Shown: piece after piece, positions 1 to 51,834 of the stretch | How positions within the stretch are numbered: the stretch's first letter is position 1 | Layout: every line of letters begins with the position of its first letter | NCBI GenBank assembly: GCA_973895155.1 | Contig: OZ316899.1 | Span: forward strand, 953,573-1,017,572 | Direction of reading: 5' to 3' | Length of the DNA stretch: 64,000 nt | Source: Marsupella aquatica | Taxonomy: Eukaryota; Plantae; Marchantiophyta | The notes under the pieces: model-generated | Databases searched by the model: none | The model's input: the letters and a program-made list of their open reading frames with translations, nothing else | Told to the model about the DNA's origin: nothing | Program-made: the position numbers and the translations under genes

Positions 1-486
1 TGCCGTTCTCGAGCTGCCCTTTCTGACTCCTCGTCCTCGTAAGTCTTGATGTACTCAGTTGCCCGTTCGAACAGGCATCCCCAGAAATGTGCCGCTTGAT
101 TGACGTTGCTCATACCCTCCTTAGGTTGATCGTCGGTATCTACTCTCTCCCCGAGTGCTTGCCTAAGCAGCTGACAGTAGTTGGCCTCCCGTAGTCGTCT
201 GCCTAGTTCGTGCTCGCAAATGAGCCACCATCTCCTGCAAGCGCTCCTTACCCCTCTCCTCTGCCGGTCCTTCTTCCCGTTAATCCTTCCTAGCCGCCGA
301 CGCTTAACGCGCCATAACCCTAATCGGGTTTTCACCCTCAGCCTTACCTCCGGCCTCTGCCCGGGTTCCATGGTTGCCCCTAATTGTTTATATTTTCCTT
401 GTTTTGTCACTATACTAAGGTGTTCCTAGGGTGCCTTCCTGCTTTACCCACTTAACCGGCCGAGTGATTCCTGTCTAGGCATCACA
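1..486 (-). repeat. Partial 3' LTR of family A copy 1, including the N-terminal part of the LTR-encoded ORF (ATG at 371)
   Basis: Matches 10882..11367. Begins TGTGATGCC on the minus strand directly after the PPT and TA. Confidence 0.95.
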
Positions 487-488
487 TA

Positions 489-499
489 GCTCCCCACTT
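489..499 (-). other. Polypurine tract of family A copy 1
   Basis: Minus strand AAGTGGGGAGC-TA-TGTGATG. The same layout precedes the family B LTR (AAGTAGGGGGC-TA-TGTGGG). Confidence 0.75.
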
Positions 500-3400
500 A
501 ATTGTGAAGCGTCCTCGCGAACAACTTCATCTTCGTCCATATAGTATTTCTTGAGGCGGTCATAATGGATGCGAACTGGATATACCTCTCCCGTAATGTT
601 GGCCAATTGCACGGAGCCATTGGGGAACATCATGGTTACTCTAAAGGGTCCTAACCAGCGAGTGTAAAGCTTTCCTGGAAACCTACTATACCTACTGTCA
701 TAAAGTAGCACAAGATCACCGGTATGAATACTAACTACTTTTAACCTTTTATCATACTGCTGCTTCATGATATTCTGTCTATATTCTACTCTCTCGGCTG
801 AAATCATTCTCGCTTCCTCTAAAGCTTCTAACCTATATTCTCGCTCCTTTAGGCTCTCCTCCGCTGAGGCTCTTTCCTCAATTGTAACTTGAAATGTCGG
901 TATCTCAAGTTGCATGGGTACCAGGGCTTCTTGTCCAAAGGTTAAGAAGAAGGGTGTATGACCGGTAGTGGATTTATAGGCAAGATTGTAAGCAAAAACA
1001 GCAGCAAACAATTTATCATCCCAATCGAGTTTGTTCTGAGCTACTGTTTTGTTCAATATCTTTCCTATGATTCCGTTTGCTCGTTCTGTCAACCCGTTTG
1101 CCTTTGGATGGTAGGGAGTAGTAGGCCTATGTTTAACTAAATACTGCTCATTTAAACGACTAATTATATCATTCAAAAAATGGGTTCCTCTATCACTAAC
1201 TAATTCTAGGGGTGCTCCATACCTGGTGAAGATCTGCTCATACATGAATCTAGCCGTAGTAATTGCATCATCCTTCGTTGTTGGTCTGGCCTCTACCCAT
1301 TTAGTTGCATAATCCGTAGCCAGGATTATGTACTTGTTCCGTCGAGGGTGGGTCAGTGGTTTCAGAGGTCCAATGTAATCAATACCCCACTTCTCGAATG
1401 GTGCCAGAGGTAGAATAGGGTGCAGTGGATGCCTGGTGGACGCCCTTGGTCCTCCCGCTCGTTGACAAGGATCGCATTGTTTGATAAACTGATAGACATC
1501 TTTGTGCAAGGTGGGCCACCAGTAACCGGCATTTAATATCTTCTTAGACGTGGTTACTGGGGCAAAATGTCCTCCGGCCTCCTCTCCATGCATGGCCCGT
1601 AGGACTCGTTTTACCTCTCTCTTCTCCAAACACCTTTGAATCGTGCCGTTGATTCCATGCTTGTGCAGTATGCCTTTAATGCACTGATACTGTCTGACCT
1701 TCCGCACAAAGACTGCGGCTTGCTCTCGGCTTAATCCTGGCTGTAATCTGGAAGTGCTGAGAAATTGTAAAATCTCAGGGTACCATGTACCAGCTATTTC
1801 CACAACGAATAGCTCCTCGTCGGGGAATCGATCATCGATGCAATCCGTGGCAGGTTTACCTGTGATCCTTGAAAAGAAGTCGGCATTGGCATGTAACTTT
1901 CCTGGCTTGATCCTCAGCTCATAGTCAAACTCCTGTAATAGCAAAATCCATCTTGCTACTCTGCCTGTAAGGTCCGGCTTATTGACTAGGTACTTCAAAC
2001 TTTCATGATCAGTATGAAAGATTACCTTGTACCCTAGTAAATAATGCCTAAACTTTTTACAAGAATAAATGACTCCTAATGCTTCTCTTTCCGTGGTAGA
2101 GTAGTTCCGTTCGGCATCGGCAAGCTGACGGCTTGCGAAGTATATGGGATGGTCCCTTCTTTTCTCATCCAACTGACTTAGTACTGAGCCAATACAGAAG
2201 CCCGAGACATCTACAAAAACATGAAAATCTTTGTTCCAGTCCGGTGCTATCATGACTGGGGCCTCTACTAACATCTGCTTCAATTCTACCACCGCTGTGA
2301 CTCGTTCGGGTGTGGGTTCGAAGTCTGCTCCTGCCTTGAGCATATTGGTTAATGGTAAAGCTAGCTTGGCAAAATCCTTGATGAACCGGCGATAGTAACC
2401 AATGCATCCCAAGAAGGATCTTACATCCTTTATGTTCTTAGGTTGCATGATATCTAGCCATACTGCTAGCTTACCTTTGTCAATCTCAATGCCCTTCCTT
2501 GATACCTTGTGACCTAGTAGCACCCCCTCGGTTACTGCAAAAAAACATTTATCTGGGTGTAACTTGAGACCCACCTCCCTACATCTCATGAAGGTTTTCC
2601 TGAGGTATTTAGCATGTTTCGATGCCTTCCCGAATACTGCAAAGTCATCAATGAAGATTTCCATGAACTTTCTCAAGTAATCATGAAAAATGTTCACCAT
2701 TAATCGTTGGAACATAGCTGGTGCGTTGCAGAGTCCAAACGGCATACGATTGAAGACATAGATCCCCCATTCCGTGATGAAGGCCGTCTTGATTTGGTCT
2801 TCCTGCCGAATCCTGATTTGGTTATAACCAGAGTATCCATCCATGAATGAATATAGTTCATGACTGGCTACCATGTCTAGTACCATATCAGTAAACGGTA
2901 AAGGAAAATGGTCTTTTAATGTTGCTTCATTCAGCTTCCTGTAATCCTGACAAACCCGGATCTTGGGTTTACCATCGGGTCCAGCTTTCTTGGGAACTAT
3001 CACAATTGGAGACACCCAGTCTGAATGCAGGACTGGAGTGATGAATCCAGCTTCCACTAGTTTGTCGATTTCTGTTTTGACCAGCAGGGAATACCTCGGG
3101 TTCATCCTTCGAATTGGTTGTCGAAATGATTTGGCTCCTAACATGAGATCAATTCGATGTTCCCCTAGTGTTGGATCTACGCCCTTTAGATCTTGGTGAC
3201 TCCATGCAAACACATCCTAAAATTCAATCAATAAGTCACTGATCTCTTTCTCGAGCTCAGGTGCTAGGTTTCTCCCTAAGTTCAGTTCTCTTCCCTCTCC
3301 TAAGTCGAGCTTCCGATATTGCCGTGCTTGGATCATATTAATCTGCTTCTTCAAATTCGGGTCCAGTTCGGCTTCCAGTCTCTCTAATCTCATACCTCCA

Positions 3401-3647
3401 TAAACTGGGATCTCGGCTGGACTAGCTGAGTCGGTCCCTTCCTTGGTGTCCATAGATGGTCTCCTTACCGGTCTATTCGGTTTTGAATTAGTGGTCGGCT
3501 CCCCTTCCTGCCTTGGCTCTGGATCGTGTCTGTCCATCTCATCCACCTCTTGCTCCTGAGAGTTAGGCCGCTGTGCTCTCTCGGCTTCTAATAGGGCCTC
3601 AATTTGTTCTGCCCTCGTAATCGGCTTGTATGCCGATCCCTTGGTAT

Positions 3648-6641
3648 TTAATTCCTTGCCGATGATCGATGGCGTTGTGGACCCCGTCGGCTCTGCCACA
3701 ACGCCTGCAGAAAATCCACTGTCCCTGCTACTGCTCCCCACTTAGCCGTTTCATCCAATTGGTCTACATCCTTAACTTCCTCCGGAATTGCAGCTAAAAA
3801 GGTGGATTCTATTGTAAAGCAGTCCTCGACCTCTTCGTCTTCTTCTTCCAAGTCACCTTCCATTGGTTCTTGCCATAATCCGCTGGGGGGTACCTCTGGT
3901 CCAAAGACACCTTCTTCGGTTAGGTTAGTGAAGCATTCTAACCAACGTACTTCATCGGCTGACTCCAGTCCACTATCGTACCCATCTACTTCCCTTATGC
4001 TTTTCCTACGGTCATCCTTAGTGTCCCAGGATACCGTGATAGAGGGGGTCCCGAAAGTGAACTGCTTTTTACCCCAATCTTCTATTACCTCGACTAGGTA
4101 CAGCCATGGCCTACCAATCAATAGCCGGAATGACGTAGGATTTACCGGCTTCATTACTACATAGTTAATGCTAAAGAAGATACCTCCTATCTCTGTCTTG
4201 ATGCCGGTTAACACTCCCGTCGGAATGACCTGATATCCATTGGCCATGTTCAACACTCTTCCAGTCATCTCCGGTGTTAGACCCCACCCTTTTGCTGTTG
4301 AATCAATCATAATACATACCCCTGATCCTCCATCGATGGGTACCCGTAGTAATAATTCTCCTTGAATCATTAATGGTAATGCTGGGGCTCCTTGATCTTC
4401 TTCTATCATTAGTACGTCGGATCTGGTTGCTACCTTGGGTAATCTCGGCTTGCCGAGAATAGCCTTCCTTAATTGCTTCCGGAAGTACGGGCTATTTTTC
4501 AATAGTTGACCTACTGTTGCCGAGACTCTAGATTCTAGTACATCTTTAGCCAGGTCATAGGGAACAATCGGCTTCTCCTCTGGTGGTGTTTCCGTCTTGG
4601 ATTCGGCCAGTTTTGCCACGCTAGTCTCCACAGCTGTTGGGTCTTCCGAAGCAAACAATGCTTTTGCTCGTTTTACATCCTTGGCAATGGCTTCGGTATT
4701 CTCCAGGGTTTCTAATTCTCTTAGTTGTTCCTTAACACTAGCCGTAACAGAGGGGTAGAACAACTTAGGATGATCTCGATTGAAGTCGCTATCTTGTGAA
4801 GGATTGGTTTCAATGGTGGGCTCATGGCTTACCTGTATTGCCGGAGCCCTCCCTTCTTCTTCTGTTGATGTTGACGAAGAGTCGATCCTTTCCTTCGTAA
4901 CCTTCCCTTTATTTTTGGCCAGCCCATCCCACCTTTCCTTCCTTCTGGTAGATCGAGTAGAGACCCGGTAGCAATCATGATCTAAATCCTCCTCTGAGAA
5001 GGTTGATAGGGCTTCGGCCTCATCATCAGATGGTACGAACTCTGCCTCGGCATCCTCTTGCCATCCTAGTTCGATGTGGTTGATTTGAACTCCTCCGGGG
5101 GTAGTACCTGGCGGTAAGATCTTGATCGGCAAAAGCTTATGATTTGCGGCCAGGCCTGCCAACCAAGTAGGACATTGCCCTAGCATATGACCTTCCTGTC
5201 GGCATCCCATACATAGCTGAGCTGGTTGTCCATCACCCTGTTTGCGTGCATTCGGGTATTCTCTAGCAAAATGGCCAGGTTGACCACAATTATAGCACGC
5301 CGCAAATCTTTGCACATTCGGCCTAGGAGGTACTGACGGGTTCTGAATAATCCGAGGATACATCTCTCCTGGATTGTTCCTTAACCCTGACCACAGAGAT
5401 GCAGGTCTGTTGGATAGGTCTCGTGCTCCAGTCTCACTGATGCCGAAAACACTATCAGCGGCATCTCCCAAAAAGTACTCTACTTCTCCCTGACATGGTC
5501 TGATCTCGGCCACATGCCGAACATGATTAGTATTAAGCTTAGGACAAGCATCTTTATGGTGTCCGGTTTTATAACATAAGGCACACCATACAGAGCTATC
5601 CTCCTGTACTACCTTCTTCTTTGGTTTTACCTCTGCAATGATAGCCTTAAGTTGCTCGGTAAGGGCTACGATGTTATCTGGTGGCTTAGCCTCCATCTTG
5701 ACTTTCGTCTTCCCTCTCCTTCTGCCCTTCCTTTTCCTAGTTTTTTCTTCTTCAGAACTAGAAGATGACTCACTCTTGCTACTCCCACTATTCGAGCTTG
5801 ACTTATCACTTCTAGACTTCTTGGAATGTTTCTTCTTCTTATCTTTTTTCTTATGGGGTGATCCCTCCTCTGATGAGGAACTCTCAGACTTAAGCTGTTT
5901 CTTCCGGCTTGTGATATCTGCATTAATGTATAATTGAATATCCTTAATTGCTTCGGCTAAGGTCTCCGGGTTCTCCTTCCTAATTGCAAAACTCATCTTC
6001 TGTGGCAAAGCATTCACCAACCATTGAAGTTGCATACCTTCAGATGCATTGGTCTTTGTACGTCTTACCAGTTTCTGAAAGCGTTGCAAGAACTTCCTGA
6101 AGGATTTGTTCTCCTTGAACCGAAGTTGTCCCAACTTCAGCACTGCTAGTTCTGAAGTTCCAATGGGTCGAAACTCCTTAACAAAGAGTGTTTTGAAGAT
6201 ATCCCAGATGGCTTGATCTTCCACATCTAATGCTCTGTACCAAGGCCTAGCCTCACCCTTGAACAGGCCGGGAAGAATCTGCATCTTGATGGCCGATTCT
6301 CCATTTGCTGCAGCGGTTCCCTCGAAATCATCCAACCATTCGTCCGGATCCTCATCTCCTCTCCCATGAAATGCCTTGTAATGTATGCGCGACCGCTGGC
6401 TCAATCTGGTCCCTGGCCTCTCGTCTGGCCGTGCCTCTGGTTCCCCCATGTCGGTTGGAGACTCACTTCTCCTTACCGACTCTTCTTCTGGTATGTCTTC
6501 TTCGACGCCACTTCCAGTTTCGGAGCTACCAGCTCTTTCTGCCCCTCTCAGTCGTTGTGTATCATGCCACCCGGCGAGCTGCTGCAGTCGAGCTCTCTCC
6601 CGTTGAATCACTCTTTCTTCCCTCGGCGTAAGGTCAGTCAT
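3648..6641 (-). CDS. gag: gag-protease polyprotein (997 aa) of A copy 1
   Basis: Retrotransposon gag core (FHGRGDEDPDEWLDDF), CX2CX4HX4C knuckles and an aspartic-protease-like motif VPIDGGSG...LLIGRPWL. Confidence 0.92.
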   Translation of the reverse strand: MTDLTPREERVIQRERARLQQLAGWHDTQRLRGAERAGSSETGSGVEEDIPEEESVRRSESPTDMGEPEARPDERPGTRLSQRSRIHYKAFHGRGDEDPDEWLDDFEGTAAANGESAIKMQILPGLFKGEARPWYRALDVEDQAIWDIFKTLFVKEFRPIGTSELAVLKLGQLRFKENKSFRKFLQRFQKLVRRTKTNASEGMQLQWLVNALPQKMSFAIRKENPETLAEAIKDIQLYINADITSRKKQLKSESSSSEEGSPHKKKDKKKKHSKKSRSDKSSSNSGSSKSESSSSSEEEKTRKRKGRRRGKTKVKMEAKPPDNIVALTEQLKAIIAEVKPKKKVVQEDSSVWCALCYKTGHHKDACPKLNTNHVRHVAEIRPCQGEVEYFLGDAADSVFGISETGARDLSNRPASLWSGLRNNPGEMYPRIIQNPSVPPRPNVQRFAACYNCGQPGHFAREYPNARKQGDGQPAQLCMGCRQEGHMLGQCPTWLAGLAANHKLLPIKILPPGTTPGGVQINHIELGWQEDAEAEFVPSDDEAEALSTFSEEDLDHDCYRVSTRSTRRKERWDGLAKNKGKVTKERIDSSSTSTEEEGRAPAIQVSHEPTIETNPSQDSDFNRDHPKLFYPSVTASVKEQLRELETLENTEAIAKDVKRAKALFASEDPTAVETSVAKLAESKTETPPEEKPIVPYDLAKDVLESRVSATVGQLLKNSPYFRKQLRKAILGKPRLPKVATRSDVLMIEEDQGAPALPLMIQGELLLRVPIDGGSGVCIMIDSTAKGWGLTPEMTGRVLNMANGYQVIPTGVLTGIKTEIGGIFFSINYVVMKPVNPTSFRLLIGRPWLYLVEVIEDWGKKQFTFGTPSITVSWDTKDDRRKSIREVDGYDSGLESADEVRWLECFTNLTEEGVFGPEVPPSGLWQEPMEGDLEEEDEEVEDCFTIESTFLAAIPEEVKDVDQLDETAKWGAVAGTVDFLQALWQSRRGPQRHRSSARN
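3658..3717 (-). promoter_or_regulatory. Candidate -1 ribosomal frameshift signal (slippery G GAU UUU plus stem-loop/pseudoknot)
   Basis: Heptamer GGATTTT at 3717-3711 is in the gag phase. It is followed by a 5-nt spacer and a perfect 10-bp stem GGCGTTGTGG/CCACAACGCC (3705-3696 with 3680-3671). It lies inside the gag/pol overlap, where pol is in the -1 frame. Confidence 0.8.
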
Positions 6642-6688
6642 TACCTACGCTTCCGTTCTAACTTCATATCTCACGGCTTAAGAAATGC

Positions 6689-6706
6689 CCCCTCCATCTA
6701 GCGCCA
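6689..6706 (-). other. Primer binding site of A copy 1, probably tRNA-Asn
   Basis: TGGCGCTAGATGGAGGGG, 4 nt (TTTT) after the LTR CA. 17/18 complementary to the plant cytosolic tRNA-Asn 3' end as I recall it (CCCCTCCTTCTAGCGCCA). Confidence 0.75.
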
Positions 6707-6710
6707 AAAA

Positions 6711-9700
6711 TGTGGTGCGTCCCATGGCTCCCTAAACCCAAGAAACCCCCCAGCTCAAGCCGATTCCCGCAGGTTTCGCGCTTGGCGAGGCCGTTTCCGC
6801 GGCTTAGCGGCATGGGACGCTGCTAACCTTCTACTACTACTATTAACATTTTACACACATATACTGGACAGATCCTTCATCGGGTCATGAGATACGTAGC
6901 CGGCCTAATATAGGCCTTCCCCTGTCTTCCCCTGTCTTCCCCTCCGTCTCGTTAGGTATGTTTGGATTCCGCCGCCGGAATGATCCCCAATAGGCTTGGT
7001 TAAGCCGCTAAGACCTCTCTCAGCTCGACACATCCAACTCTCACTCCCCTGCTTACTTTCCTTCGTTCTGTTGATGTGGGCACTCTTCACACAAGTTAAT
7101 GCGACACACAAATAGCAAAATGACTCATTCTGACTGAGTCATACCATGCACTTGCCATACAAACAGTACATCTCATACACAAGTTCTGCGAACTAAGCCG
7201 TGAGGCCAACTCTATTCAGCTCTTAGGCATGAGGAAACATGAATATACACAAGGGTCACTGTATGACTAACCGAGAGCTTCTCGTACTACTTGATCCCAG
7301 CCCGGCTGGTGCAAACTAAAAACTTGCTAAAGAAGAGGCCCTGAGCTCCCCGCTGCCCAGGTACTTATCCTGGTAGTGGATCCGCCATTCTTTGCATCGT
7401 AAGCCTAATCTACTTAACAGTAATCTACTTGCCCGAATCTACCTATGTACAGCAAGGCAGGAGCACAAGTGTTGCTCCTACCAGTGGGACCGCAATCCCA
7501 CTAAGCTAAGTGTCAGGGCCGCTCCTGGTTCTGATCCTAATCCTAAACGTGGAGATCCGTGCCCGCCCTGCCCACTCACGCCTCCTCCCTCCACGTCCGC
7601 CCTCCCTAAAAGGAACGGCGCCCTTGCACCGTCACGACACCGGTGGTGGATCCTCAATGGACGCCCCCAACACTTCCTCCGCAGCCACTGCCGTTGGCCC
7701 GCCTACTGACAGATTACCTGCCCTTGACCGAGTCAACTCTCCCTCGGCCTGACTGGGTCCACCTTCGGCTTCAGCCTCGACACCGGCCTCGGCAATACCC
7801 ACGGCTTCGGCCTCAGCCACTCTCACGGCTTCGGCTTCAGCCACTCCCTCGGCTTCGGCTTCCCCTTCCCCTAGGGTAGTTGGATCCTTAGCCGTGACCC
7901 TGTCTGGGGTCGGTGCTGGGTCTACCTCCTTGATCACCACGGCCTGTGAAGTCGTATTACTCCTTGACCCTGAAGGTTTCCGCTTCTTCTTCGTTGGTGG
8001 CTCGGCAGCTGGTCCCTTCCCCTTCCCACTTACCTCCGGCACTGGTGCAGGTGGCGCGGCTTGTCCTTCGGCAATTACCACCCCTGGTAACTGGTTTGTC
8101 CCAACAGGAGATGGACCTGCTGCAGCTAAGCATTTAAATACTGCGGCTTGTTTCTTCAGCCGCTCTGTTTGGTTGTCGGCCCGCCGCTGTAGGTTCTCCA
8201 TCTTCCTCGTGATTTCCTCCAACTCCTCTTGGGTTTCATCCAGGTCCTTACGTGCCCCCTCCAGCTCGTTTTTGGCCTCCTCCTGCTCCCTGTGGGCTTC
8301 CTCCAATTCCTTCTTCAAGGTAGCCTTCTCCTCCTGGGTTGCTCTTAGCTCCTTGTCGAGCTCTGCAATGATGACAGACTCCATCTGGTTCATCTTGGCG
8401 TAAGTCTGTTCGAGCATCTCGTCCTTCTCCCTTAGGTCGGCCTTGAAGCTGGCCGTCAGGGACGCAAGCTCCTGCTGCAGCGCCATAATCCCTTGATAGG
8501 ATTTCCCTAACTCGACCTCCTTCTGCTCAAGGGCTCCACGGATTTTCTCGAGCTCCCCTTTCAACGCCCATTCCTTTCTTTGGGTCTCCGCCATGGCCCG
8601 GCTGTTGGCTGTTATGTGGGCCTCCTCTGTATTCTTCAGCTCTTGCTTCCACTTTTCCCTTTCTTTGATCGTGTCGGCCAACTCTTCCTGCGTCTGAGTC
8701 AGTTTATCCTTGATATTCTGATTATCAGCCTGCGCGGCGTCCAACTGCCCCTGCATGATGTTCAGCTCATGTCGTTTAATCCGCAGTTCATCTTGGGCTT
8801 TCTTGGCCGCCCTTAGATCTTCAATCTCGGCTTCCATCCTCCTAAGCCGCCGAATGACCTCGTCCTTCTTGCTTCTCTCTAAAGCCACCGCTTCTTCTAA
8901 TTGGTGCTTCTCCAACTGCTCCCTATGGAAAAAGGGTCCTACCTCCAACTCCTCTCCAAAGATGCCGAGCGCAAGTTCCCCACACATCTCACCATACTCC
9001 ATGGCTCTATTCTTAGCGTAGGTGGAGTAAGTAGAAGTGATCGGCATCGCCCATCGTGGCCTCTGCTCCCAAGCCGTCCTGCGGATCTCTTCAATCGTGG
9101 CTAGAGGTTTGCTTCCTTTTTCGGCTAGCCGCCTGATGTCCTCCGGCCAATCTCCTCCTGGTAAATCCTTTTCCTTAGCCAGGGCGGCCTCTTCCTCCTG
9201 CTTGATTCGCTCCTGAAATTCCTGCACCGTCTGTTTTATGCCGTCGAAGCTCGGGGGAGCAACATCTGGTGGGGGAGACTCAGGGCTACTCTGCTGGTTG
9301 GGGTCCCCTCGCACTACCCTTGGAAGTGTGGGGACAAACCGGCCACAGGTCCTTACTCCTGGAACGTGATGGTCCGACCCATAGCCGGAATTATCATGGC
9401 TGCAGTCCTCCACTGCCTCCTCTACCTCTTGGATTTCCGGCTTCTCCCTCTCCTCTTCCTCGGTAGGAGCTTCGGGCAATTCTGCCTCAGATTCGGAGCT
9501 TGAGGTTCCCACGTACATTCGAACACCTGGCTTGGATTCCGGCCTGATTCTCTCGTCTCCAGCAAAGGGGTTTTCTCTTGTGAGCCGGTGTAGGCCTACC
9601 TCTGTAGTAGTGTCCTGCATGGTTGCCGTTGCCGTTGTTGTTGCCGATGCCGATTTCTTTTCTTTCTCCAGTAGTTTCAGCAGACTCTGCATGCCTGGTT

Positions 9701-11367
9701 GCTGCATCGGCAAGTCTTCCTTCCTGGGCCTAAACACCTGCTCGATCGTAGGACTAACAGGTGGTTGAGGCTTCTCAGCCAACGGCCTCGGCGTTGGAGC
9801 TTCCTCGGGTGCCCTTACCTGCAGGGGAAGTACCGGGGCAAAAGTCTGACCTCTGGCATACCGGCACAACAGCGGCATGTGATAGCCAAGCCGCGACACG
9901 CTCCCCATGCCGATTACCTGCTGCTCCTCCTTTAAGATCTTCTTCAATTGGTTGAGGAGGTACCCGTTGTAGTCCCGGCTTGGGTCTGGCCTTTCTGCCA
10001 GATAGACCTGTGCCTTGCCGATCTCTGCCCTCGGCAAGTTACAATGCATGGTCACCCGCAAGAAGTCGATCATCTCTCCTATGTGCGGGTTGGTGCAGGT
10101 GTTCCGGAAGAAGCCATTCTTCGTTGATGGCCCGGGGAACGACCGGAACTCCTTGTCAGGCAAGGTCTTCCTGGTATCAACTTTGGTCTTATTGCCCATC
10201 GGCAAGCCAAACACTTCGGCAATCACCTTGGGAGTAAGATAGAAATCCTTCCCATATATCCTCGTGCAATTGGTCTCGGGTTCCCATGACCCCACGAATT
10301 CTAATAGGTCTGACTCCGGTACCTCCGGCTTCAGCCATGGTAATCTTACAAAGGCCTCCAAGCCGGATCCGGCCATGAAGCCTTGGTACTTCTTGGTCTG
10401 CATGGCCGTAAAGCATGCATCCTCCTCCCGTGCAAAATGTAGTTGCACCTCCACCGGTAGGGTTGCCGCCCAGCCCTTCCAGGTGTCATCCCTGGTTGGA
10501 ATGGCCTTGATGGGATCGACCTCCTCCTCTTCGGCTTCTCCCTGCCTCCTGCTCTGCTGCTCGGCTGGCTTCTTTGGTGCCGTCGACCTCGTTCTTTTTG
10601 CCGGGGTGGCTTCATCGTTGACGGCTCCCTTCCTCTTCATCTCTGCTGCCGTGGAGGTTTCTCCTAGCACCGTTGCCTGGGTCCACCTTTCCGTGCTACC
10701 CTTTAATTCCCAGTGTATGTCGTTGCAGTTCTTGATGGCCTCTCGGATGCCGACGACGCTGTCCTTGCAAAACAGAAGATCGTCGAGTTGATTGGAAGTA
10801 GGCGTCCACAGGAACTCGTCCTTGATGAGTTCGCCTCCTAAGAAAGCCGTCTTCTGCAGCTCCCACAATCGAGCGAGCTCCTGCCGTTCTCGAGCTGCCC
10901 TTTCTGACTCCTCGTCCTCGTAAGTCTTGATGTACTCAGTTGCCCGTTCGAACAGGCATCCCCAGAAATGTGCCGCTTGATTGACGTTGCTCATACCCTC
11001 CTTAGGTTGATCGTCGGTATCTACTCTCTCCCCGAGTGCTTGCCTAAGCAGCTGACAGTAGTTGGCCTCCCGTAGTCGTCTGCCTAGTTCGTGCTCGCAA
11101 ATGAGCCACCATCTCCTGCAAGCGCTCCTTACCCCTCTCCTCTGCCGGTCCTTCTTCCCGTTAATCCTTCCTAGCCGCCGACGCTTAACGCGCCATAACC
11201 CTAATCGGGTTTTCACCCTCAGCCTTACCTCCGGCCTCTGCCCGGGTTCCATGGTTGCCCCTAATTGTTTATATTTTCCTTGTTTTGTCACTATACTAAG
11301 GTGTTCCTAGGGTGCCTTCCTGCTTTACCCACTTAACCGGCCGAGTGATTCCTGTCTAGGCATCACA
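6711..11367 (-). repeat. 5' LTR of A copy 1, 4657 bp
   Basis: TG...CA termini (TGTGATGCC...GCACCACA), adjacent to the PBS. Same length and termini as both LTRs of copy 2. Confidence 0.95.
7632..11252 (-). CDS. LTR-encoded accessory protein, 1206 aa from the first ATG (basic N-terminus, conserved globular domain, long coiled coil, Ala/Glu-rich tail)
   Basis: Uninterrupted ORF entirely inside the LTR; ATG in strong context ACCATGG. The track start at 11291 is GTG. Homologous reading frames are kept in the diverged LTRs at 17220-18322 and 62565-63687. Confidence 0.88.
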   Translation of the reverse strand: MEPGQRPEVRLRVKTRLGLWRVKRRRLGRINGKKDRQRRGVRSACRRWWLICEHELGRRLREANYCQLLRQALGERVDTDDQPKEGMSNVNQAAHFWGCLFERATEYIKTYEDEESERAARERQELARLWELQKTAFLGGELIKDEFLWTPTSNQLDDLLFCKDSVVGIREAIKNCNDIHWELKGSTERWTQATVLGETSTAAEMKRKGAVNDEATPAKRTRSTAPKKPAEQQSRRQGEAEEEEVDPIKAIPTRDDTWKGWAATLPVEVQLHFAREEDACFTAMQTKKYQGFMAGSGLEAFVRLPWLKPEVPESDLLEFVGSWEPETNCTRIYGKDFYLTPKVIAEVFGLPMGNKTKVDTRKTLPDKEFRSFPGPSTKNGFFRNTCTNPHIGEMIDFLRVTMHCNLPRAEIGKAQVYLAERPDPSRDYNGYLLNQLKKILKEEQQVIGMGSVSRLGYHMPLLCRYARGQTFAPVLPLQVRAPEEAPTPRPLAEKPQPPVSPTIEQVFRPRKEDLPMQQPGMQSLLKLLEKEKKSASATTTATATMQDTTTEVGLHRLTRENPFAGDERIRPESKPGVRMYVGTSSSESEAELPEAPTEEEEREKPEIQEVEEAVEDCSHDNSGYGSDHHVPGVRTCGRFVPTLPRVVRGDPNQQSSPESPPPDVAPPSFDGIKQTVQEFQERIKQEEEAALAKEKDLPGGDWPEDIRRLAEKGSKPLATIEEIRRTAWEQRPRWAMPITSTYSTYAKNRAMEYGEMCGELALGIFGEELEVGPFFHREQLEKHQLEEAVALERSKKDEVIRRLRRMEAEIEDLRAAKKAQDELRIKRHELNIMQGQLDAAQADNQNIKDKLTQTQEELADTIKEREKWKQELKNTEEAHITANSRAMAETQRKEWALKGELEKIRGALEQKEVELGKSYQGIMALQQELASLTASFKADLREKDEMLEQTYAKMNQMESVIIAELDKELRATQEEKATLKKELEEAHREQEEAKNELEGARKDLDETQEELEEITRKMENLQRRADNQTERLKKQAAVFKCLAAAGPSPVGTNQLPGVVIAEGQAAPPAPVPEVSGKGKGPAAEPPTKKKRKPSGSRSNTTSQAVVIKEVDPAPTPDRVTAKDPTTLGEGEAEAEGVAEAEAVRVAEAEAVGIAEAGVEAEAEGGPSQAEGELTRSRAGNLSVGGPTAVAAEEVLGASIEDPPPVS

Positions 11368-16719: not shown

Positions 16720-17216
16720 CCGATACTCCCAACTAAGGACTATTCCATACAAAACCCATCAGACACACATTTCTGATCCTCTCCACAATGGACACCTTCT
16801 CCTCCTTTGTTGACGAGGTATCCGATCCAACATCCAACGGACAATCTCCGACATAACTTTTTACGCACAAAATATCCGACCCTAAACCCAATGGACACAA
16901 ATATCCGATGCATTCCGTGACGGTCCCAGTCCGATACAACTACCAACGCAAACATCTTGCGATGCATTAAGGTTCGAACGCATTATGCAGTCATGGCGAC
17001 ATAGTTTCCGATATGTTTAGCATCGGAGACTGTCCGATAGTAGTACGATGGGACAGCGTATGCGATGGGTTTTACATCGGAATTGGCAGGTCCGATGGGA
17101 TCAGGATCGGAAAATACGTTGCGGGGCACATCAGATATTGTCCGAAGTGTTCGACATGGGATGGGTGACGTTTGGCTCAAAAGGAGTATCGGAAAACCGC
17201 CAAAAATGTACTAGTG
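16720..17216. repeat. CACTA-1 subterminal repeat region and right TIR
   Basis: More than ten TCCGA/TCGGA motifs in both orientations, ending in TAGTG. Confidence 0.85.
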
Positions 17217-17219
17217 CTT

Positions 17220-19220
17220 AGTCTGATAATCAGATTATCAAGGATAAACTGTCTCGGACCCAAGGGGAGTTGGCCAACGCGGTCAAGAAAATAGAGAAGT
17301 GGAAGCGGGAGCTAAGAGACGCAGAGGAGGCCCACATAGCAACCAACAATTGGGCCATGGCGGAGACCCAAAGGAAGGAGAGGGCGTTGAAGGGGGAGCT
17401 CAAGGATCTCCGCGGAGCCCTTGAGCAGAAGGAGGCCAAGTTAGGGAAATCCTATCAAGGGATTATTGTGATGCAGTAGGAGCTTGCATCCCTAACGGCC
17501 AGCTTCAAGGCCAACCTGCCTGAGAAAGATGACCAGCTCGATCAAACTTACGCCAAGACAAACCAGATGGAGTTTGAGGTCGTAACGGAGTTTGACAAGG
17601 AGTTGAGAGCAATCCAGGAGGAGAGGGCTACCTTGCGGAAGGAATTGGAGGAAGCCCAAAAGGAGTTGGAGGAGGCGTGCAAGGACCTGGACAAAACGCA
17701 GGTGGAGTTGGAGGAAATCACAAGGAAGATGGAGAACTTACAGTGGCGGGCCGACAACCAAACAGAGCGGCTGAAGAAACAAGTTGCAGTATTTAAGTGC
17801 TTGGCTTCATCTTTTCAAACTCCAATTGTGGCAACCAAGTTGCCAAGGGTAGTACTGGCCAAAGGACAAGCCGCAACACTTGCACCGGTGCCGGAGGTAA
17901 GTGGCAAGGGGAAGGGACCAGCTGCCGAACCAGGGAAGAAGAAGAAGCGGAAATTTTCAAGGTCAGGGAGTAACGCGGCTTCTCAAGCCATCATGACCAA
18001 GGAGGAGAACCCGACACCAACCTCAGGTAGGGTCACGGCAGAGGATCCAACTGTCCTAGAAGGCGGGGATGGCAAGGCCGAAGCCGGGACAATCAGTGAT
18101 GAAGCCAGTGTACCAGATTCACCACTAGAGCAGGTTGGGGAGGCCGTAGCCGTATTGGAGGCCATGGCCGATGCTGAGGCCAAAGCCGAGGGTGGACCCA
18201 ATCAGGCCGCAACAGAGTTGACTGGGTCCGGGGCAGGTAATGTGTCAGAGGACGGGCCTATAGCAGTGGTTGCGGAGGAAGCGTTGGGGGCGTCTATTGA
18301 GGATCAATCACCGCTACCATGACGGTGGAGGAGGGCCGCTCCTTTTAAGGAGGGCGGACGTGGAGAGAGGAGGCATGAGTGGGCAGGGCAGGCTCAGATC
18401 TCCAAGTTTAGAATTAGGATCAGGACCAAGAGGCGGCCCTGACACTTAGATTAGTGGGATTGCGGATCCACTGGTAAGAGCAACACTTGTGCTCCTGCCT
18501 CGCTGTACATAGATAGATTACAGTTAGGATAGATTAGGCTTATACTGCAAGGAATTAGGCGGATCTATTGCCATGATAAGTACCTGGGCAACGGGGAGTT
18601 CAGGGCCTTCTTCTTTAGCAAGTTCTTAGTGCACCAGTTGGGCTGGGTCAAGTAGTAAAAGAAGCTCTTGGTTAGTTATACAGTGACCCTTGTGTATATT
18701 CATGTTTCCTCATGCCTAAGAGATGAATAGAGTTGGCCTCACAACTTAGTTTGCAGATCTTGTGTATGAGAAGTACTGTTTGTATGGCAAGTGCATGGTA
18801 TAACTCAGTCAAAAGGAGTCATTTTGCTATTTGTGTGTTGCATTAACTTGTTTGAAGATTGCCCACATCAACCAAGAGAGAAGGAAGTAAGCAAGGTAGT
18901 AAGAGTTGGATGTGTTGAGCTCAGAGAGGTCTTAGCGGCTAACCCAAGCCAGTTGGGGATCATTCCGGCGGCAGAATCCAAACATACCTAAAGGAGGACC
19001 AGGAGAGGAAGACAAGGGAAGGCATAGAAGAGGCCGGCTACGTATCTCATGACCCAATGAAGGAGCTGTCCAATATATGTGTGTAAAATGTTAGTAGAAG
19101 AGAGTTAGCAGCGTCCCATGCCGCTAAGCCGCGGAACTGGCTTTGCCAAGAGTGAAACCTGCAGGAATCGGCTTGTGTAGGGGGGTTTCTTGGGTTTAGG
19201 GAGCCATGGGACGCACCACA
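17220..19220 (+). repeat. 3' part of a diverged family-A LTR (solo or 3' LTR) interrupted by CACTA-1; contains the C-terminal part of the LTR ORF (to 18322, TAG at 17477-17479)
   Basis: Collinear with the A LTR coiled-coil and tail coding region and the non-coding end. Ends GAGCCATGGGACGCACCACA like family A. Followed by GTACC, with no PBS. Confidence 0.88.
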
Positions 19221-24262: not shown

Positions 24263-27200
24263 TGTGGTGCGTCCCATGGCTCCCTAAACCCAAGAAACCC
24301 CCCAGCTCAAGCCGATTCCCGCAGGTTTCGCGCTTGGCGAGGCCGTTTCCGCGGCTTAGCGGCATGGGACGCTGCTAACCTTCTACTACTACTATTAACA
24401 TTTTACACACATATACTGGACAGATCCTTCATCGGGTCATGAGATACGTAGCCGGCCTAATATAGGCCTTCCCCTGTCTTCCCCTGTCTTCCCCTCCGTC
24501 TTGTTAGGTATGTTTGGATTCCGCCGCCGGAATGATCCCCAATAGGCTTGGTTAAGCCGCTAAGACCTCTCTCAGCTCGACACATCCAACTCTCACTCCC
24601 CTGCTTACTTTCCTTCTTTCTGTTGATGTGGGCACTCTTCACACAAGTTAATGCGACACACAAATAGCAAAATGACTCATTCTGACTGAGTCATACCATG
24701 CACTTGCCATACAAACAGTACATCTCATACACAAGTTCTGCGAACTAAGCCGTGAGGCCAACTCTATTCAGCTCTTAGGCATGAGGAAACATGAATATAC
24801 ACAAGGGTCACTGTATGACTAACCGAGAGCTTCTCGTACTACTTGATCCCAGCCCGGCTGGTGCAAACTAAAAACTTGCTAAAGAAGAGGCCCTGAGCTC
24901 CCCGCTGCCCAGGTACTTATCCTGGTAGTGGATCCGCCATTCTTTGCATCGTAAGCCTAATCTACTTAACAGTAATCTACTTGCCCGAATCTACCTATGT
25001 ACAGCAAGGCAGGAGCACAAGTGTTGCTCCTACCAGTGGGACCGCAATCCCACTAAGCTAAGTGTCAGGGCCGCTCCTGGTTCTGATCCTAATCCTAAAC
25101 GTGGAGATCCGTGCCCGCCCTGCCCACTCACGCCTCCTCCCTCCACGTCCGCCCTCCCTAAAAGGAACGGCGCCCTTGCACCGTCACGACACCGGTGGTG
25201 GATCCTCAATGGACGCCCCCAACACTTCCTCCGCAGCCACTGCCGTTGGCCCGCCTACTGACAGATTACCTGCCCTTGACCGAGTCAACTCTCCCTCGGC
25301 CTGACTGGGTCCACCTTCGGCTTCAGCCTCGACACCGGCCTCGGCAATACCCACGGCTTTGGCCTCAGCCACTCTCACGGCTTCGGCTTCAGCCACTCCC
25401 TCGGCTTCGGCTTCCCCTTCCCCTAGGGTAGTTGGATCCTTAGCCGTGACCCTGTCTGGGGTCGGTGCTGGGTCTACCTCCTTGATCACCACGGCCTGTG
25501 AAGTCGTATTACTCCTTGACCCTGAAGGTTTCCGCTTCTTCTTCGTTGGTGGCTCGGCAGCTGGTCCCTTCCCCTTCCCACTTACCTCCGGCACTGGTGC
25601 AGGTGGCGCGGCTTGTCCTTCGGCAATTACCACCCCTGGTAACTGGTTTGTCCCAACAGGAGATGGACCTGCTGCAGCTAAGCATTTAAATACTGCGGCT
25701 TGTTTCTTCAGCCGCTCTGTTTGGTTGTCGGCCCGCCGCTGTAGGTTCTCCATCTTCCTCGTGATTTCCTCCAACTCCTCTTGGGTTTCATCCAGGTCCT
25801 TACGTGCCCCCTCCAGCTCGTTTTTGGCCTCCTCCTGCTCCCTGTGGGCTTCCTCCAATTCCTTCTTCAAGGTAGCCTTCTCCTCCTGGGTTGCTCTTAG
25901 CTCCTTGTCGAGCTCTGCAATGATGACAGACTCCATCTGGTTCATCTTGGCGTAAGTCTGTTCGAGCATCTCGTCCTTCTCCCTTAGGTCGGCCTTGAAG
26001 CTGGCCATCAGGGACGCAAGCTCCTGCTGCAGCGCCATAATCCCTTGATAGGATTTCCCTAACTCGACCTCCTTCTGCTCAAGGGCTCCGCGGATTTTCT
26101 CGAGCTCCCCTTTCAACGCCCATTCCTTTCTTTGGGTCTCCGCCATGGCCCGGCTGTTGGCTGTTATGTGGGCCTCCTCTGTATTCTTCAGCTCTTGCTT
26201 CCACTTTTCCCTTTCTTTGATCGTGTCGGCCAACTCTTCCTGCGTCTGAGTCAGTTTATCCTTGATATTCTGATTATCAGCCTGCGCGGCGTCCAACTGC
26301 CCCTGCATGATGTTCAGCTCATGTCGTTTAATCCGCAGTTCATCTTGGGCTTTCTTGGCCGCCCTTAGATCTTCAATCTCGGCTTCCATCCTCCTAAGCC
26401 GCCGAATGACCTCGTCCTTCTTGCTTCTCTCTAAAGCCACCGCTTCTTCTAATTGGTGCTTCTCCAACTGCTCCCTATGGAAAAAGGGTCCTACCTCCAA
26501 CTCCTCTCCAAAGATGCCGAGCGCAAGTTCCCCACACATCTCACCATACTCCATGGCTCTATTCTTAGCGTAGGTGGAGTAAGTAGAAGTGATCGGCATC
26601 GCCCATCGTGGCCTCTGCTCCCAAGCCGTCCTGCGGATCTCTTCAATCGTGGCTAGAGGTTTGCTTCCTTTTTCGGCTAGCCGCCTGATGTCCTCCGGCC
26701 AATCTCCTCCTGGTAAATCCTTTTCCTTAGCCAGGGCGGCCTCTTCCTCCTGCTTGATTCGCTCCTGAAATTCCTGCACCGTCTGTTTTATGCCGTCGAA
26801 GCTCGGGGGAGCAACATCTGGTGGGGGAGACTCAGGGCTACTCTGCTGGTTGGGGTCCCCTCGCACTACCCTTGGAAGTGTGGGGACAAATCGGCCACAG
26901 GTCCTTACTCCTGGAACGTGATGGTCCGACCCATAGCCGGAATTATCATGGCTGCAGTCCTCCACTGCCTCCTCTACCTCTTGGATTTCCGGCTTCTCCC
27001 TCTCCTCTTCCTCGGTAGGAGCTTCGGGCAATTCTGCCTCAGATTCGGAGCTTGAGGTTCCCACGTACATTCGAACACCTGGCTTGGATTCCGGCCTGAT
27101 TCTCTCGTCTCCAGCAAAGGGGTTTTCTCTTGTGAGCCGGTGTAGGCCTACCTCTGTAGTAGTGTCCTGCATGGTTGCCGTTGCCGTTGTTGTTGCCGAT

Positions 27201-28919
27201 GCCGATTTCTTTTCTTTCTCCAGTAGTTTCAGCAGACTCTGCATGCCTGGTTGCTGCATCGGCAAGTCTTCCTTCCTGGGCCTAAACACCTGCTCGATCG
27301 TAGGACTAACAGGTGGTTGAGGCTTCTCAGCCAACGGCCTCGGCGTTGGAGCTTCCTCGGGTGCCCTTACCTGCAGGGGAAGTACCGGGGCAAAAGTCTG
27401 ACCTCTGGCATACCGGCACAACAGCGGCATGTGATAGCCAAGCCGCGACACGCTCCCCATGCCGATTACCTGCTGCTCCTCCTTTAAGATCTTCTTCAAT
27501 TGGTTGAGGAGGTACCCGTTGTAGTCCCGGCTTGGGTCTGGCCTTTCTGCCAGATAGACCTGTGCCTTGCCGATCTCTGCCCTCGGCAAGTTACAATGCA
27601 TGGTCACCCGCAAGAAGTCGATCATCTCTCCTATGTGCGGGTTGGTGCAGGTGTTCCGGAAGAAGCCATTCTTCGTTGATGGCCCGGGGAACGACCGGAA
27701 CTCCTTGTCAGGCAAGGTCTTCCTGGTATCAACTTTGGTCTTATTGCCCATCGGCAAGCCAAACACTTCGGCAATCACCTTGGGAGTAAGATAGAAATCC
27801 TTCCCATATATCCTCGTGCAATTGGTCTCGGGTTCCCATGACCCCACGAATTCTAATAGGTCTGACTCCGGTACCTCCGGCTTCAGCCATGGTAATCTTA
27901 CAAAGGCCTCCAAGCCGGATCCGGCCATGAAGCCTTGGTACTTCTTGGTCTGCATGGCCGTAAAGCATGCATCCTCCTCCCGTGCAAAATGTAGTTGCAC
28001 CTCCACCGGTAGGGTTGCCGCCCAGCCCTTCCAGGTGTCATCCCTGGTTGGAATGGCCTTGATGGGATCGACCTCCTCCTCTTCGGCTTCTCCCTGCCTC
28101 CTGCTCTGCTGCTCGGCTGGCTTCTTTGGTGCCGTCGACCTCGTTCTTTTTGCCGGGGTGGCTTCATCGTTGACGGCTCCCTTCCTCTTCATCTCTGCTG
28201 CCGTGGAGGTTTCTCCTAGCACCGTTGCCTGGGTCCACCTTTCCGTGCTATCCTTTAATTCCCAGTGTATGTCGTTGCAGTTCTTGATGGCCTCTCGGAT
28301 GCCGACGACGCTGTCCTTGCAAAACAGAAGATCGTCGAGTTGATTGGAAGTAGGCGTCCATAGGAACTCGTCCTTGATGAGTTCGCCTCCTAAGAAAGCC
28401 GTCTTCTGCAGCTCCCACAATCGAGCGAGCTCCTGCCGTTCTCGAGCTGCCCTTTCTGACTCCTCGTCCTCGTAAGTCTTGATGTACTCAGTTGCCCGTT
28501 CGAACAGGCATCCCCAGAAATGTGCCGCTTGATTGACGTTGCTCATACCCTCCTTAGGTTGATCGTCGGTATCTACTCTCTCCCCGAGTGCTTGCCTAAG
28601 CAGCTGACAGTAGTTGGCCTCCCGTAGTCGTCTGCCTAGTTCGTGCTCGCAAATGAGCCACCATCTCTTGCAAGCGCTCCTTACCCCTCTCCTCTGCCGG
28701 TCCTTCTTCCCGTTGATCCTTCCTAGCCGCCGACGCTTAACGCGCCCTAACCCTAATCGGGTTTTCACCCTCAGCCTTACCTCCGGCCTCTGCCCGGGTT
28801 CCATGGTTGCCCCTAATTGTTTATATTTTCCTTGTTTTGTCACTATACTAAGGTGTTCCTAGGGTGCCTTCCTGCTTTACCCACTTAACCGGCCGAGTGA
28901 TTCCTGTCTAGGCATCACA
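24263..28919 (-). repeat. 3' LTR of A copy 2, 4657 bp
   Basis: TG...CA termini, flanked by the TSD on the left and the PPT (28922..28932) on the right. Confidence 0.95.
25184..28804 (-). CDS. LTR-encoded accessory protein, intact copy (1206 aa)
   Basis: Uninterrupted ORF; differs from the copy at 7632..11252 by only a few substitutions. Confidence 0.88.
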   Translation of the reverse strand: MEPGQRPEVRLRVKTRLGLGRVKRRRLGRINGKKDRQRRGVRSACKRWWLICEHELGRRLREANYCQLLRQALGERVDTDDQPKEGMSNVNQAAHFWGCLFERATEYIKTYEDEESERAARERQELARLWELQKTAFLGGELIKDEFLWTPTSNQLDDLLFCKDSVVGIREAIKNCNDIHWELKDSTERWTQATVLGETSTAAEMKRKGAVNDEATPAKRTRSTAPKKPAEQQSRRQGEAEEEEVDPIKAIPTRDDTWKGWAATLPVEVQLHFAREEDACFTAMQTKKYQGFMAGSGLEAFVRLPWLKPEVPESDLLEFVGSWEPETNCTRIYGKDFYLTPKVIAEVFGLPMGNKTKVDTRKTLPDKEFRSFPGPSTKNGFFRNTCTNPHIGEMIDFLRVTMHCNLPRAEIGKAQVYLAERPDPSRDYNGYLLNQLKKILKEEQQVIGMGSVSRLGYHMPLLCRYARGQTFAPVLPLQVRAPEEAPTPRPLAEKPQPPVSPTIEQVFRPRKEDLPMQQPGMQSLLKLLEKEKKSASATTTATATMQDTTTEVGLHRLTRENPFAGDERIRPESKPGVRMYVGTSSSESEAELPEAPTEEEEREKPEIQEVEEAVEDCSHDNSGYGSDHHVPGVRTCGRFVPTLPRVVRGDPNQQSSPESPPPDVAPPSFDGIKQTVQEFQERIKQEEEAALAKEKDLPGGDWPEDIRRLAEKGSKPLATIEEIRRTAWEQRPRWAMPITSTYSTYAKNRAMEYGEMCGELALGIFGEELEVGPFFHREQLEKHQLEEAVALERSKKDEVIRRLRRMEAEIEDLRAAKKAQDELRIKRHELNIMQGQLDAAQADNQNIKDKLTQTQEELADTIKEREKWKQELKNTEEAHITANSRAMAETQRKEWALKGELEKIRGALEQKEVELGKSYQGIMALQQELASLMASFKADLREKDEMLEQTYAKMNQMESVIIAELDKELRATQEEKATLKKELEEAHREQEEAKNELEGARKDLDETQEELEEITRKMENLQRRADNQTERLKKQAAVFKCLAAAGPSPVGTNQLPGVVIAEGQAAPPAPVPEVSGKGKGPAAEPPTKKKRKPSGSRSNTTSQAVVIKEVDPAPTPDRVTAKDPTTLGEGEAEAEGVAEAEAVRVAEAKAVGIAEAGVEAEAEGGPSQAEGELTRSRAGNLSVGGPTAVAAEEVLGASIEDPPPVS

Positions 28920-31900: not shown

Positions 31901-32174
31901 CCGGTCTATTCGGTTTTGAATTAGTGGTCGGCTCCCCTTCCTGCCTTGGCTCTGGATCGTGTCTGTCCATCTCATCCACCTCTTGCTCCTGAGAGTTAGG
32001 CCGCTGTGCTCTCTCGGCTTCTAATAGGGCCTCAATTTGTTCTGCCCTCGTAATCGGCTTGTATGCCGATCCCTTGGTATTTAATTCCTTGCCGATGATC
32101 GATGGCGTTGTGGACCACGTCGGCTCTGCCACAACGCCTGCAGAAAATCCACTGTCCCTGCTACTGCTCCCCAC
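28908..32174 (-). pseudogene. pol: pol of A copy 2, one premature TGA at 31554-31556
   Basis: Same RT/RH/INT motifs as copy 1. CGA in copy 1 is TGA here, and the codon broken in copy 1 is an intact CAG here. Confidence 0.93.
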
Positions 32175-35074: not shown

Positions 35075-35121
35075 TACCTACGCTTCCGTTCTAACTTCAT
35101 ATCTCACGGCTTAAGAAATGC

Positions 35122-35139
35122 CCCCTCCATCTAGCGCCA
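35122..35139 (-). other. Primer binding site of A copy 2 (tRNA-Asn-like)
   Basis: TGGCGCTAGATGGAGGGG, 4 nt after the LTR end at 35144. Confidence 0.75.
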
Positions 35140-35143
35140 AAAA

Positions 35144-42300: not shown

Positions 42301-42501
42301 CCCTCCTATAGTAACTTGCTTACCCCTAGATAACTTTGCATAACTAAAATTCCCTCTTACCTCTACTAAGCTTCCCTTCTTACTTAAGTGCCCTAAACCT
42401 AGCTACTCTGATAGCACTAAAACTTTTTCCCTAACTATTTCCTCTTCTAAACGAAAGAATGTCATGTTTCTCTACACTAGCTGACACTGAGCCATCCCAC
42501 A
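39337..42501 (-). repeat. 3' LTR of B, 3165 bp; includes an imperfect ~179-bp internal duplication (~39610..39970) and a CAG/AGC-rich tract (~41030..41580)
   Basis: TG...CA termini. Direct repeat of 48665..51829 (offset 9328). Confidence 0.95.
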
Positions 42502-42503
42502 TA

Positions 42504-42514
42504 GCCCCCTACTT
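42504..42514 (-). other. Polypurine tract of B
   Basis: Minus strand AAGTAGGGGGC-TA-TGTGGG. Confidence 0.75.
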
Positions 42515-42541
42515 AAGTGTGCAGCGTCCCCGCAAACACAC

Positions 42542-48520: not shown

Positions 48521-48626
48521 GCCACTCACAATCACCTTCTTATCTCCCTTCTTCTCTTGAACAGCAAACCTGCAAACACACCTCCAAGTCTTGTGGCTCC
48601 ACTCCAACAAAAACTGTAAAGAGTTG

Positions 48627-51829: not shown

Positions 51830-51834
51830 CCTTT

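Follow-up and report, generated by a model that had tools for sequence, protein, structure and literature searches.

In retroviruses, the genes nef and bel/bet overlap the unique 3' region (U3) of the long terminal repeat (LTR), and sag of mouse mammary tumour virus (MMTV) is located inside U3. In plant LTR retrotransposons, on the other hand, reviews place the extra open reading frames (ORFs) in the internal region (PMC7264820, PMC6317226), and most of these extra ORFs lack a CDD or Pfam domain (PMC7264820, PMC6317226). In Athila and SIRE elements, the sense 3' ORFs are located between pol and the polypurine tract (PPT), that is, within the internal region (PMC7264820). Ogre/OTA elements have LTRs of up to ~5 kb and an ORF1 that is also internal, downstream of the primer binding site (PBS); 57% of Ogre elements contain an extra ORF with a plant mobile domain (PMC6317226). 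Liverwort genomes have been reported to contain lineages of the Phygy/Selgy type (PMC12885004), which belong to clades of non-seed plants whose elements are described as "rather short" and without extra ORFs (PMC6317226). We describe here a Ty3/gypsy (Metaviridae) LTR retrotransposon from the liverwort Marsupella aquatica (assembly GCA_973895155.1) with a complete gene of 1206 codons inside the LTR itself. The element occurs in two copies in a stretch of 64,000 nucleotides (contig OZ316899.1, positions 953,573 to 1,017,572 of the forward strand), to which we refer as the window; positions below count from its first letter. An earlier note made from the letters of the window had drawn attention to this gene, and we examine its claims in the light of a computational analysis of the window and of related sequences.

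The gene-bearing repeat has the properties of a true LTR. The segments 6711-11367 and 24263-28919 form a direct repeat of 4657 bp with 11 substitutions (self-BLAST of the window), and identity among the three LTR copies amounts to 99.5-99.8%. Each LTR starts with TGTGATG and ends with CACCACA. There are two elements of the family in the window, each ~15.5 kb long, whose internal regions differ by 20 substitutions. Copy 2 is bounded by a 5-bp target-site duplication (TSD), which reads AGGGG on the minus and CCCCT on the plus strand; copy 1 is truncated by the start of the window and its far end lies beyond it, so that the TSD is read for copy 2 only. The 19-nt PBS is identical in three loci of another liverwort, Calypogeia fissa (L003 at 13656-13674, L006 and L007), and the 22-nt PPT/LTR junction is identical letter for letter in that species. 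The PBS was matched to no tRNA, the window holds no tRNA gene according to a tRNA search, and an Rfam search gave no match. The natural stop codon of pol lies 11 nt into the 3' LTR, which means that the PPT is within the end of pol and that nothing separates pol from the LTR. By the mechanism of reverse transcription, U3 starts directly 3' of the PPT; everything downstream of the PPT, including the 3.6-kb accessory gene, belongs to the LTR. The gene is consequently present in both LTRs of every copy. All the boundary features in the earlier note (TG/CA termini, PPT, PBS and the CCCCT duplication of copy 2) were recovered at their coordinates, as was the intact sense ORF that it had described as filling about 78% of the LTR from a point 115 nt inside the 5' end.

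The order of domains in the internal region, gag - protease - reverse transcriptase - RNase H - integrase, is that of Ty3/gypsy elements, with the protease detected weakly by itself and additionally by alignment to the polyprotein of a younger element nested in one of the LTRs. Pol, in the -1 frame with respect to gag-pro, shares 94 nt with the end of the latter. The pol of each copy contains a single in-frame stop, a different one in each. LTR, TSD, PBS, PPT and domain content together identify the element as a Ty3/gypsy retrotransposon. Membership in the chromoviruses is not supported, since the last 210 residues of pol, at the integrase C-terminus, gave no Chromo match at E<=1 (Pfam; divergent chromodomains could escape). 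An additional RNase H (aRH) is the defining feature of the Tat clade (PMC6317226); a second RNase H was not found, with one RNase H region detected in pol (Pfam), which argues against placing the element in that clade (TatI-III, Ogre, Retand).

The ATG of the ORF at 11252 has the context ACCATGG, the stop codon occupies 7632-7634, and the ORF takes up 3621 of the 4657 nt of the LTR. Two of the three young LTRs have it intact, while the third has one stop as well as the nested insertion. A chance origin is excluded: the probability of a stop-free run over 1206 codons is ~1e-24 at the base composition of the LTR, and 500 first-order Markov resamples yielded a maximum stop-free stretch of 352 codons, compared to 1224 observed. 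GC content by codon position (0.60/0.44/0.64) follows a coding-like pattern. The openness of the three young LTR copies proves little by itself because the copies are 99.5-99.8% identical, and the nine ORF differences between two of them comprise four synonymous and five nonsynonymous changes. Selection in the window was gauged instead against two older plus-strand fragments of the family (62448-63686 and 17213-19220) with the Nei-Gojobori method. For residues 1-373 the ratio of nonsynonymous to synonymous rates (dN/dS) comes to 0.34, with 0.17-0.21 for residues 125-373; for residues 839-1205 it is 0.45. All of these values are biased upward by the fact that both fragments are dead (three and two stops, respectively). 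The C-terminal part of the ORF evolves fast, with 64.5% amino-acid identity compared to 78-82% nucleotide identity. Among the copies of C. fissa, dN/dS is 0.26-0.27 for the ORF and 0.19-0.23 in its conserved domain. A ratio near 1 would have spoken against the earlier note; the window values of 0.17-0.45 do not approach it.

The gene is also found outside the window. Exact-sequence look-ups of the ORF protein and of gag returned no entry. Queries with the whole ORF and with residues 85-490 gave nothing in word-indexed protein searches, probably for the reason that coiled-coil words swamped the candidates, whereas an exhaustive phmmer search with residues 82-487 against 1.84 billion representative sequences returned 22 proteins, one of which (P0012) is a spurious bacterial match. 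The best relatives, 41% identical, come from Logan assemblies; three others are "unnamed protein products" of C. fissa, and a profile search added 16 further paralogues from that species. The portion common to the window, C. fissa and Logan homologues is the central domain, residues 257-471. The decisive evidence comes from the genomic surroundings in C. fissa. At locus L003, an element with a pol 65% identical to that of the window has a 4910-bp 5' LTR (~8746-13655) containing a homologue (P0022, 10001-11557) in sense. The PBS and the PPT/LTR junction are those of the window element, pol stops a few codons into the 3' LTR, and the first 96 codons of the ORF are repeated in that 3' LTR before the locus ends. 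In L006 the ORF is in the 3' LTR, and in L007 it is in a 5157-bp LTR, between pol on one side and PBS plus gag on the other. A second LTR subfamily, 70% identical, occupies positions 1-3154 of L007 and has its own homologue upstream of its PBS, and further subfamilies at 70% identity are found in L008 and L009, with homologues that are 40-60% identical in amino acids.

LTRs of the C. fissa relatives measure 4.9-5.2 kb, so that the short-LTR relatives with an external ORF, which the earlier note had named as evidence against its claim, were not seen; the ORF is kept inside equally long LTRs. No alignment was found between the LTR DNA of the window and that of C. fissa, and the similarity of the proteins therefore reflects constraint rather than recent common DNA. 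The gene-bearing LTR is a lineage trait and not an accident of one copy, and the gene itself is real, lineage-wide and under purifying selection. Two more distant C. fissa elements (L003 at 1-3137 and L001; pol 36-48% identical) have the homologue 1.1 kb and 4.1 kb downstream of pol; the partner LTRs of both are outside the loci, and the position of the ORF relative to the LTR limits is accordingly not set for them. Two further observations concern the C. fissa loci. The segment 3426-14882 of L007 contains a single gene-bearing LTR common to two internal regions (pol upstream, PBS plus gag downstream), which is a tandem element array, probably the product of recombination. Locus L002 has a homologue (P0021, 10001-12034) with neither gag nor pol in the 10 kb to each side; its protein model is not a straight translation of the DNA and is probably spliced, and this homologue may lie in a solo LTR or be a copy domesticated by the host.

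The protein begins with a basic N-terminus containing a KRRR cluster and has a proline- and glutamate-rich linker after the central domain, a KKKRK cluster at residue 1088 and an acidic tail. Residues 91-236 are conserved among close relatives. The proline-free, heptad-like region gave weak matches alone, to coiled-coil families of Pfam. There was no other Pfam match, the central domain being examined at E<=1, and neither 10 homologues nor 19 aligned family members (the latter at E<=10) had any; PDB sequences contained no match for the ORF protein. Plant mobile domain (PF10536), Transposase_28 (PF04195) and Athila ORF-1 (PF03078) were considered as identities and gave no significant Pfam match. 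An env-like membrane protein is not supported either, as no transmembrane segment is predicted (maximum Kyte-Doolittle 19-residue mean of 1.04). The structure prediction and fold search proposed in the earlier note were carried out on residues 257-471. The AlphaFold2 model built from 32 sequences, with a predicted local distance difference test score (pLDDT) of 76 and a predicted TM-score (pTM) of 0.75, is mainly helical with a small beta-hairpin, and Foldseek found no match to it in PDB (best E 1.5) or BFVD (best E 1.3). A previous model with pLDDT 62 was likewise without a PDB match (best E over both models 1.3-2.8). The composition suggests a soluble, oligomeric and probably nuclear accessory factor that would serve the life cycle of the element.

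How such a gene could be expressed depends on where in the LTR transcription starts. We favour a placement of the gene in U3, with the promoter, the repeated region (R) and the unique 5' region (U5) in the 0.9-kb non-coding tail. The genomic RNA would then have the order R-U5-PBS-gag-pol-PPT-ORF-promoter region-R, containing the ORF once, after pol, and both ends of the DNA would receive it through reverse transcription. Translation of the protein would use a subgenomic transcript, probably a spliced one, and not the 5' LTR copy, and selection on the active lineage would maintain the gene while dead copies decay. Taken as a whole, a U3-located 3' accessory gene whose coiled-coil product, with a domain of unmatched fold, serves the element is in our judgement the best explanation and a reasonably probable one. 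The U3 placement is favoured because pol ends 11 nt inside the LTR, leaving no 3' untranslated region before it, and because the tail is better conserved than the adjoining coding DNA (86% identity to the diverged copy compared to 78% for the adjoining 1.1 kb) and has TATA-like motifs 200-530 nt from the LTR end, in addition to a 10-nt tandem repeat. It also gives gag a leader of ~240 nt, which would otherwise be 4.6 kb with a long upstream ORF, an argument that rests on scanning-dependent translation. A conserved promoter upstream of the ORF is unlikely because the ATG is preceded by 115 nt in the window but by ~1.2 kb in C. fissa.

Several points weigh against this explanation. The limits of U3, R and U5, the splicing and the expression are all read from sequence. 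The best TATA-like motif of the tail is not conserved in the 86%-identical copy, and the 1.2 kb with tandem repeats that precede the ORF in the C. fissa LTRs could act as a promoter. Ogre elements show tolerance of a long ORF ahead of gag (PMC6317226). The splice-donor-like motif at the gag start may be mere start-codon context. Third-position GC (GC3) is 0.64 in the LTR ORF (7635-11252) and 0.45 in gag/pol (478-6641), with the same gap in C. fissa L003, L006 and L007 (0.59-0.60 compared to 0.47); this excess is unexplained and could indicate a different origin or a different expression regime. The proposed function draws on composition, with neither a family nor a fold match beside it.

Three motifs near the start codons were noted in passing, and we do not rely on the splicing hints among them, which are at the level of motifs. 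The sequence AGGT(A/G)ATG at the gag start, resembling a 5' splice site between AG and GT, recurs in the leaders of C. fissa L003, L006 and L007. An acceptor-like motif is found just before the ATG of the LTR ORF. The gag leader also contains an upstream ORF of 8 codons (6639-6670, minus strand), which ends in TAATG overlapping the gag start.

The gene could alternatively be in R or U5, with transcription starting ahead of the ORF; the ORF would in that case form the first cistron, comparable to ORF1 of Ogre but upstream of the PBS. The strong start context of the ORF, the promoter- or enhancer-like appearance of the ~1.2 kb with tandem repeats in C. fissa and the 5' sense ORF of Ogre elements (PMC6317226) are consistent with such an arrangement. 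However, the 115 nt available in the window contain a single TATA-like motif, ~15 nt from the ATG, gag would need to be translated downstream of an ORF of 3.6 kb, the poly(A) site of the 5' LTR would need to be passed over, and the best-conserved part of the LTR is its non-coding tail, all of which make this placement unlikely. It is only here that a multi-kb minus-strand strong-stop DNA would be required, which would be short with the gene in U3. The earlier note had regarded a multi-kb strong-stop DNA as a special need of the element; this does not stand, since plus-strand strong-stop DNA spans the entire LTR in any long-LTR element.

A second alternative is a self-contained cassette in the LTR, equipped with a separate promoter and terminator and located upstream of the promoter of the element, so that every LTR, including solo LTRs, would express the protein. 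Many of these ORFs were called as genes by the annotators of C. fissa, the L009 LTR has the ORF but no gag or pol of the family within 10 kb, the more distant L002 homologue likewise stands alone, and the deviating GC3 in both species would suggest a separate expression regime. On the other hand, the window element leaves too little room upstream of the ORF, the C. fissa gene calls come without visible expression support, and the diverged LTR fragments of the window carry decayed ORFs. We consider a cassette of this kind improbable. The same fragments, with three and two stops in their ORFs, bear on the suggestion in the earlier note that solo-LTR formation spreads a working gene, which is unproven; according to the U3 model, the gene of a solo LTR would lack a promoter ahead of it within that LTR. 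What stands of the earlier interpretation is a true LTR with a complete gene under selection, and what does not are its conclusions about strong-stop DNA and solo-LTR spread.

A more far-reaching version, to which we assign little probability, would be a bryophyte Ty3/gypsy clade that uses its LTR as an expressed gene unit and whose nuclear, coiled-coil protein of new fold has a target in the host, such as chromatin or silencing. If this were true, solo-LTR formation would scatter hundreds of working copies, some of which may already be host genes, with the C. fissa L002 homologue as a candidate.

The remaining alternatives fare worse. The ORF could be a functionless passenger, either a recently captured fragment of a host gene or a relic that is open through the youth of its copies, consistent with the near identity of the three LTR copies, the lack of a known domain in the protein and the fast evolution of the C-terminal part. 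This reading is very unlikely and is largely refuted already by dN/dS well below 1 in two species, by a domain conserved at the protein level where the LTR DNA no longer aligns and by the presence of the ORF in LTR subfamilies only 70% identical. That the repeat is a segmental or tandem duplication or an assembly artefact and not an LTR is hardly credible: recombinant arrays do exist, as in C. fissa L007 with its LTR common to two internal regions, but the exact TG..CA ends, the 5-bp TSD of copy 2, the abutting PBS and PPT, the same limits in an independent assembly of another species and a younger element with its own TSD nested in one LTR all contradict it.

The coordinates of the features are collected in Table 1. 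The younger Ty3/gypsy element nested in the 5' LTR of copy 2 has no homologue of the LTR ORF in its own LTR. Its coding CpG observed/expected ratio is 0.12, compared to 0.6-0.7 in the surrounding element, and its PBS-like motif is 21 nt past the LTR end, not abutting the LTR. Elsewhere in the window, pieces of a CACTA-type transposase (Transposase_21, DUF4218, DUF4216) are spread over several ORFs at 12422-16398 on the plus strand, with a SET-domain ORF (12422-13090) just upstream of these pieces that may be a captured fragment; the transposase pieces mark the host as a plant. A tandem array at 52350-55210, with a period of ~705-876 bp and units 82-89% identical, adjoins the end of copy 2.

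Table 1. Positions of the element copies, their parts and related features in the window (strand as given; residues refer to the protein encoded in the LTR).
Feature	Position	Strand	Remarks
LTR, 5' of copy 1	6711..11367	-	4657 bp; TG..CA ends; 99.76% identical to 24263-28919
LTR-borne ORF	7632..11252	-	1206 codons + stop, intact; sense to element
Conserved central domain	9840..10484	-	residues 257-471, ~215 residues
Proline-free heptad-like region	8115..9023	-	residues 744-1046, ~300 residues; predicted coiled coil
Non-coding LTR tail	6711..7631	-	921 nt past ORF stop; presumed promoter, R and U5
Primer binding site, TGGCGCTAGATGGAGGGGG	6688..6706	-	PBS-like TGG motif, 4 nt past 5' LTR
Internal region, copy 1	487..6710	-	6224 bp, gag-pro-pol
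gag-pro ORF	3648..6641	-	997 codons; Retrotrans_gag, zf-CCHC (Pfam); intact
pol	475..3741	-	RVT_1, RT_RNaseH, Integrase_H2C2, rve (Pfam); one in-frame stop
Polypurine tract region	487..503	-	adjoins 3' LTR, within pol end
LTR, 3' of copy 1, first 486 nt	1..486	-	cut by window edge; 100% identical to 10882-11367
LTR, 5' of copy 2	35144..52298	-	35144-39336 + 51830-52298, nested element between; one in-frame stop in ORF copy
Internal region, copy 2	28920..35143	-	6224 bp; gag-pro intact; pol with one in-frame stop
LTR, 3' of copy 2	24263..28919	-	ORF copy 25184-28804 intact, 5 amino acids different
Nested younger Ty3/gypsy element	39337..51829	-	12.5 kb; 3165-bp LTRs 100% identical; TSD CCTTT; uninterrupted 2022-codon gag-pol
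Diverged LTR fragment, same family	17213..19220	+	~82% nt identity; 3' 2 kb of LTR; ORF part with 2 stops
Diverged LTR 5' part	62448..63686	+	~86% nt identity; begins at TGTGATG; no pol upstream; ORF part with 3 stops

Element models, LTR-finding and masking pipelines and the reviews of extra ORFs (PMC7264820, PMC6317226) handle LTRs as non-coding sequence. The present case is different in that selection maintains a gene inside the LTR, about three-quarters as long as the LTR itself, in at least two species. Its dosage amounts to two copies per insertion and one per solo LTR. The gene accounts for at least 20 "unnamed protein product" genes of C. fissa and defines a protein family that matches nothing in Pfam or PDB and has no fold match. 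In the searchable literature, neither an ORF within the LTR of a retrotransposon nor this layout was found described, although an earlier description is possible, as most subscription journals are not covered there; the phrase "LTR ORF" led to MMTV sag only, and searches on liverwort elements and on extra ORFs of bdelloids yielded nothing relevant.

Among described systems, the element is closest in the layout of its polyprotein to the Phygy/Selgy non-chromoviruses, with which it shares a polyprotein that nearly fills the internal region and in which, likewise, neither a chromodomain nor an aRH is found; the likeness is one of traits and not of a tree of reverse transcriptase, RNase H and integrase. 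The difference is in size, the window element reaching 15.5 kb through its gene-bearing LTRs. Ogre/OTA elements resemble it in their very long LTRs and in a sense ORF upstream of gag in the DNA copy. The window ORF differs in being upstream of the PBS and in having no detected plant mobile domain; no aRH was found in the window pol, and the window element has an overlap of gag-pro and pol in the -1 frame in place of the intron split of Ogre.

With the gene in U3, the sense 3' ORFs of Athila and SIRE ("env-like", eORF-3'F) would come nearest to it in RNA position, occupying the same place in the genomic RNA, after pol in sense, and they share with the window ORF that they are lineage-specific, fast-evolving and without a CDD or Pfam domain. 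The window ORF is nevertheless not a 3' ORF of that type, given that pol ends in the LTR and the ORF starts 115 nt into it.

In topology, though not by homology, MMTV sag (the "LTR ORF") is the closest analogue. It is likewise a whole sense ORF in the LTR that starts soon after the PPT/LTR border and stops upstream of the promoter-proximal part, and it is likewise present at both ends of the provirus. Sag has about one quarter of the length of the window ORF, and the window ORF, unlike sag, fills 78% of a 4.66-kb LTR. The two have no sequence or fold relationship, and in the present case the host element is a plant Ty3/gypsy element without env and the U3 placement is presumed. Where the PPT is placed can thus bring an entire gene within the terminal repeats of a plant element, in parallel to sag of MMTV.

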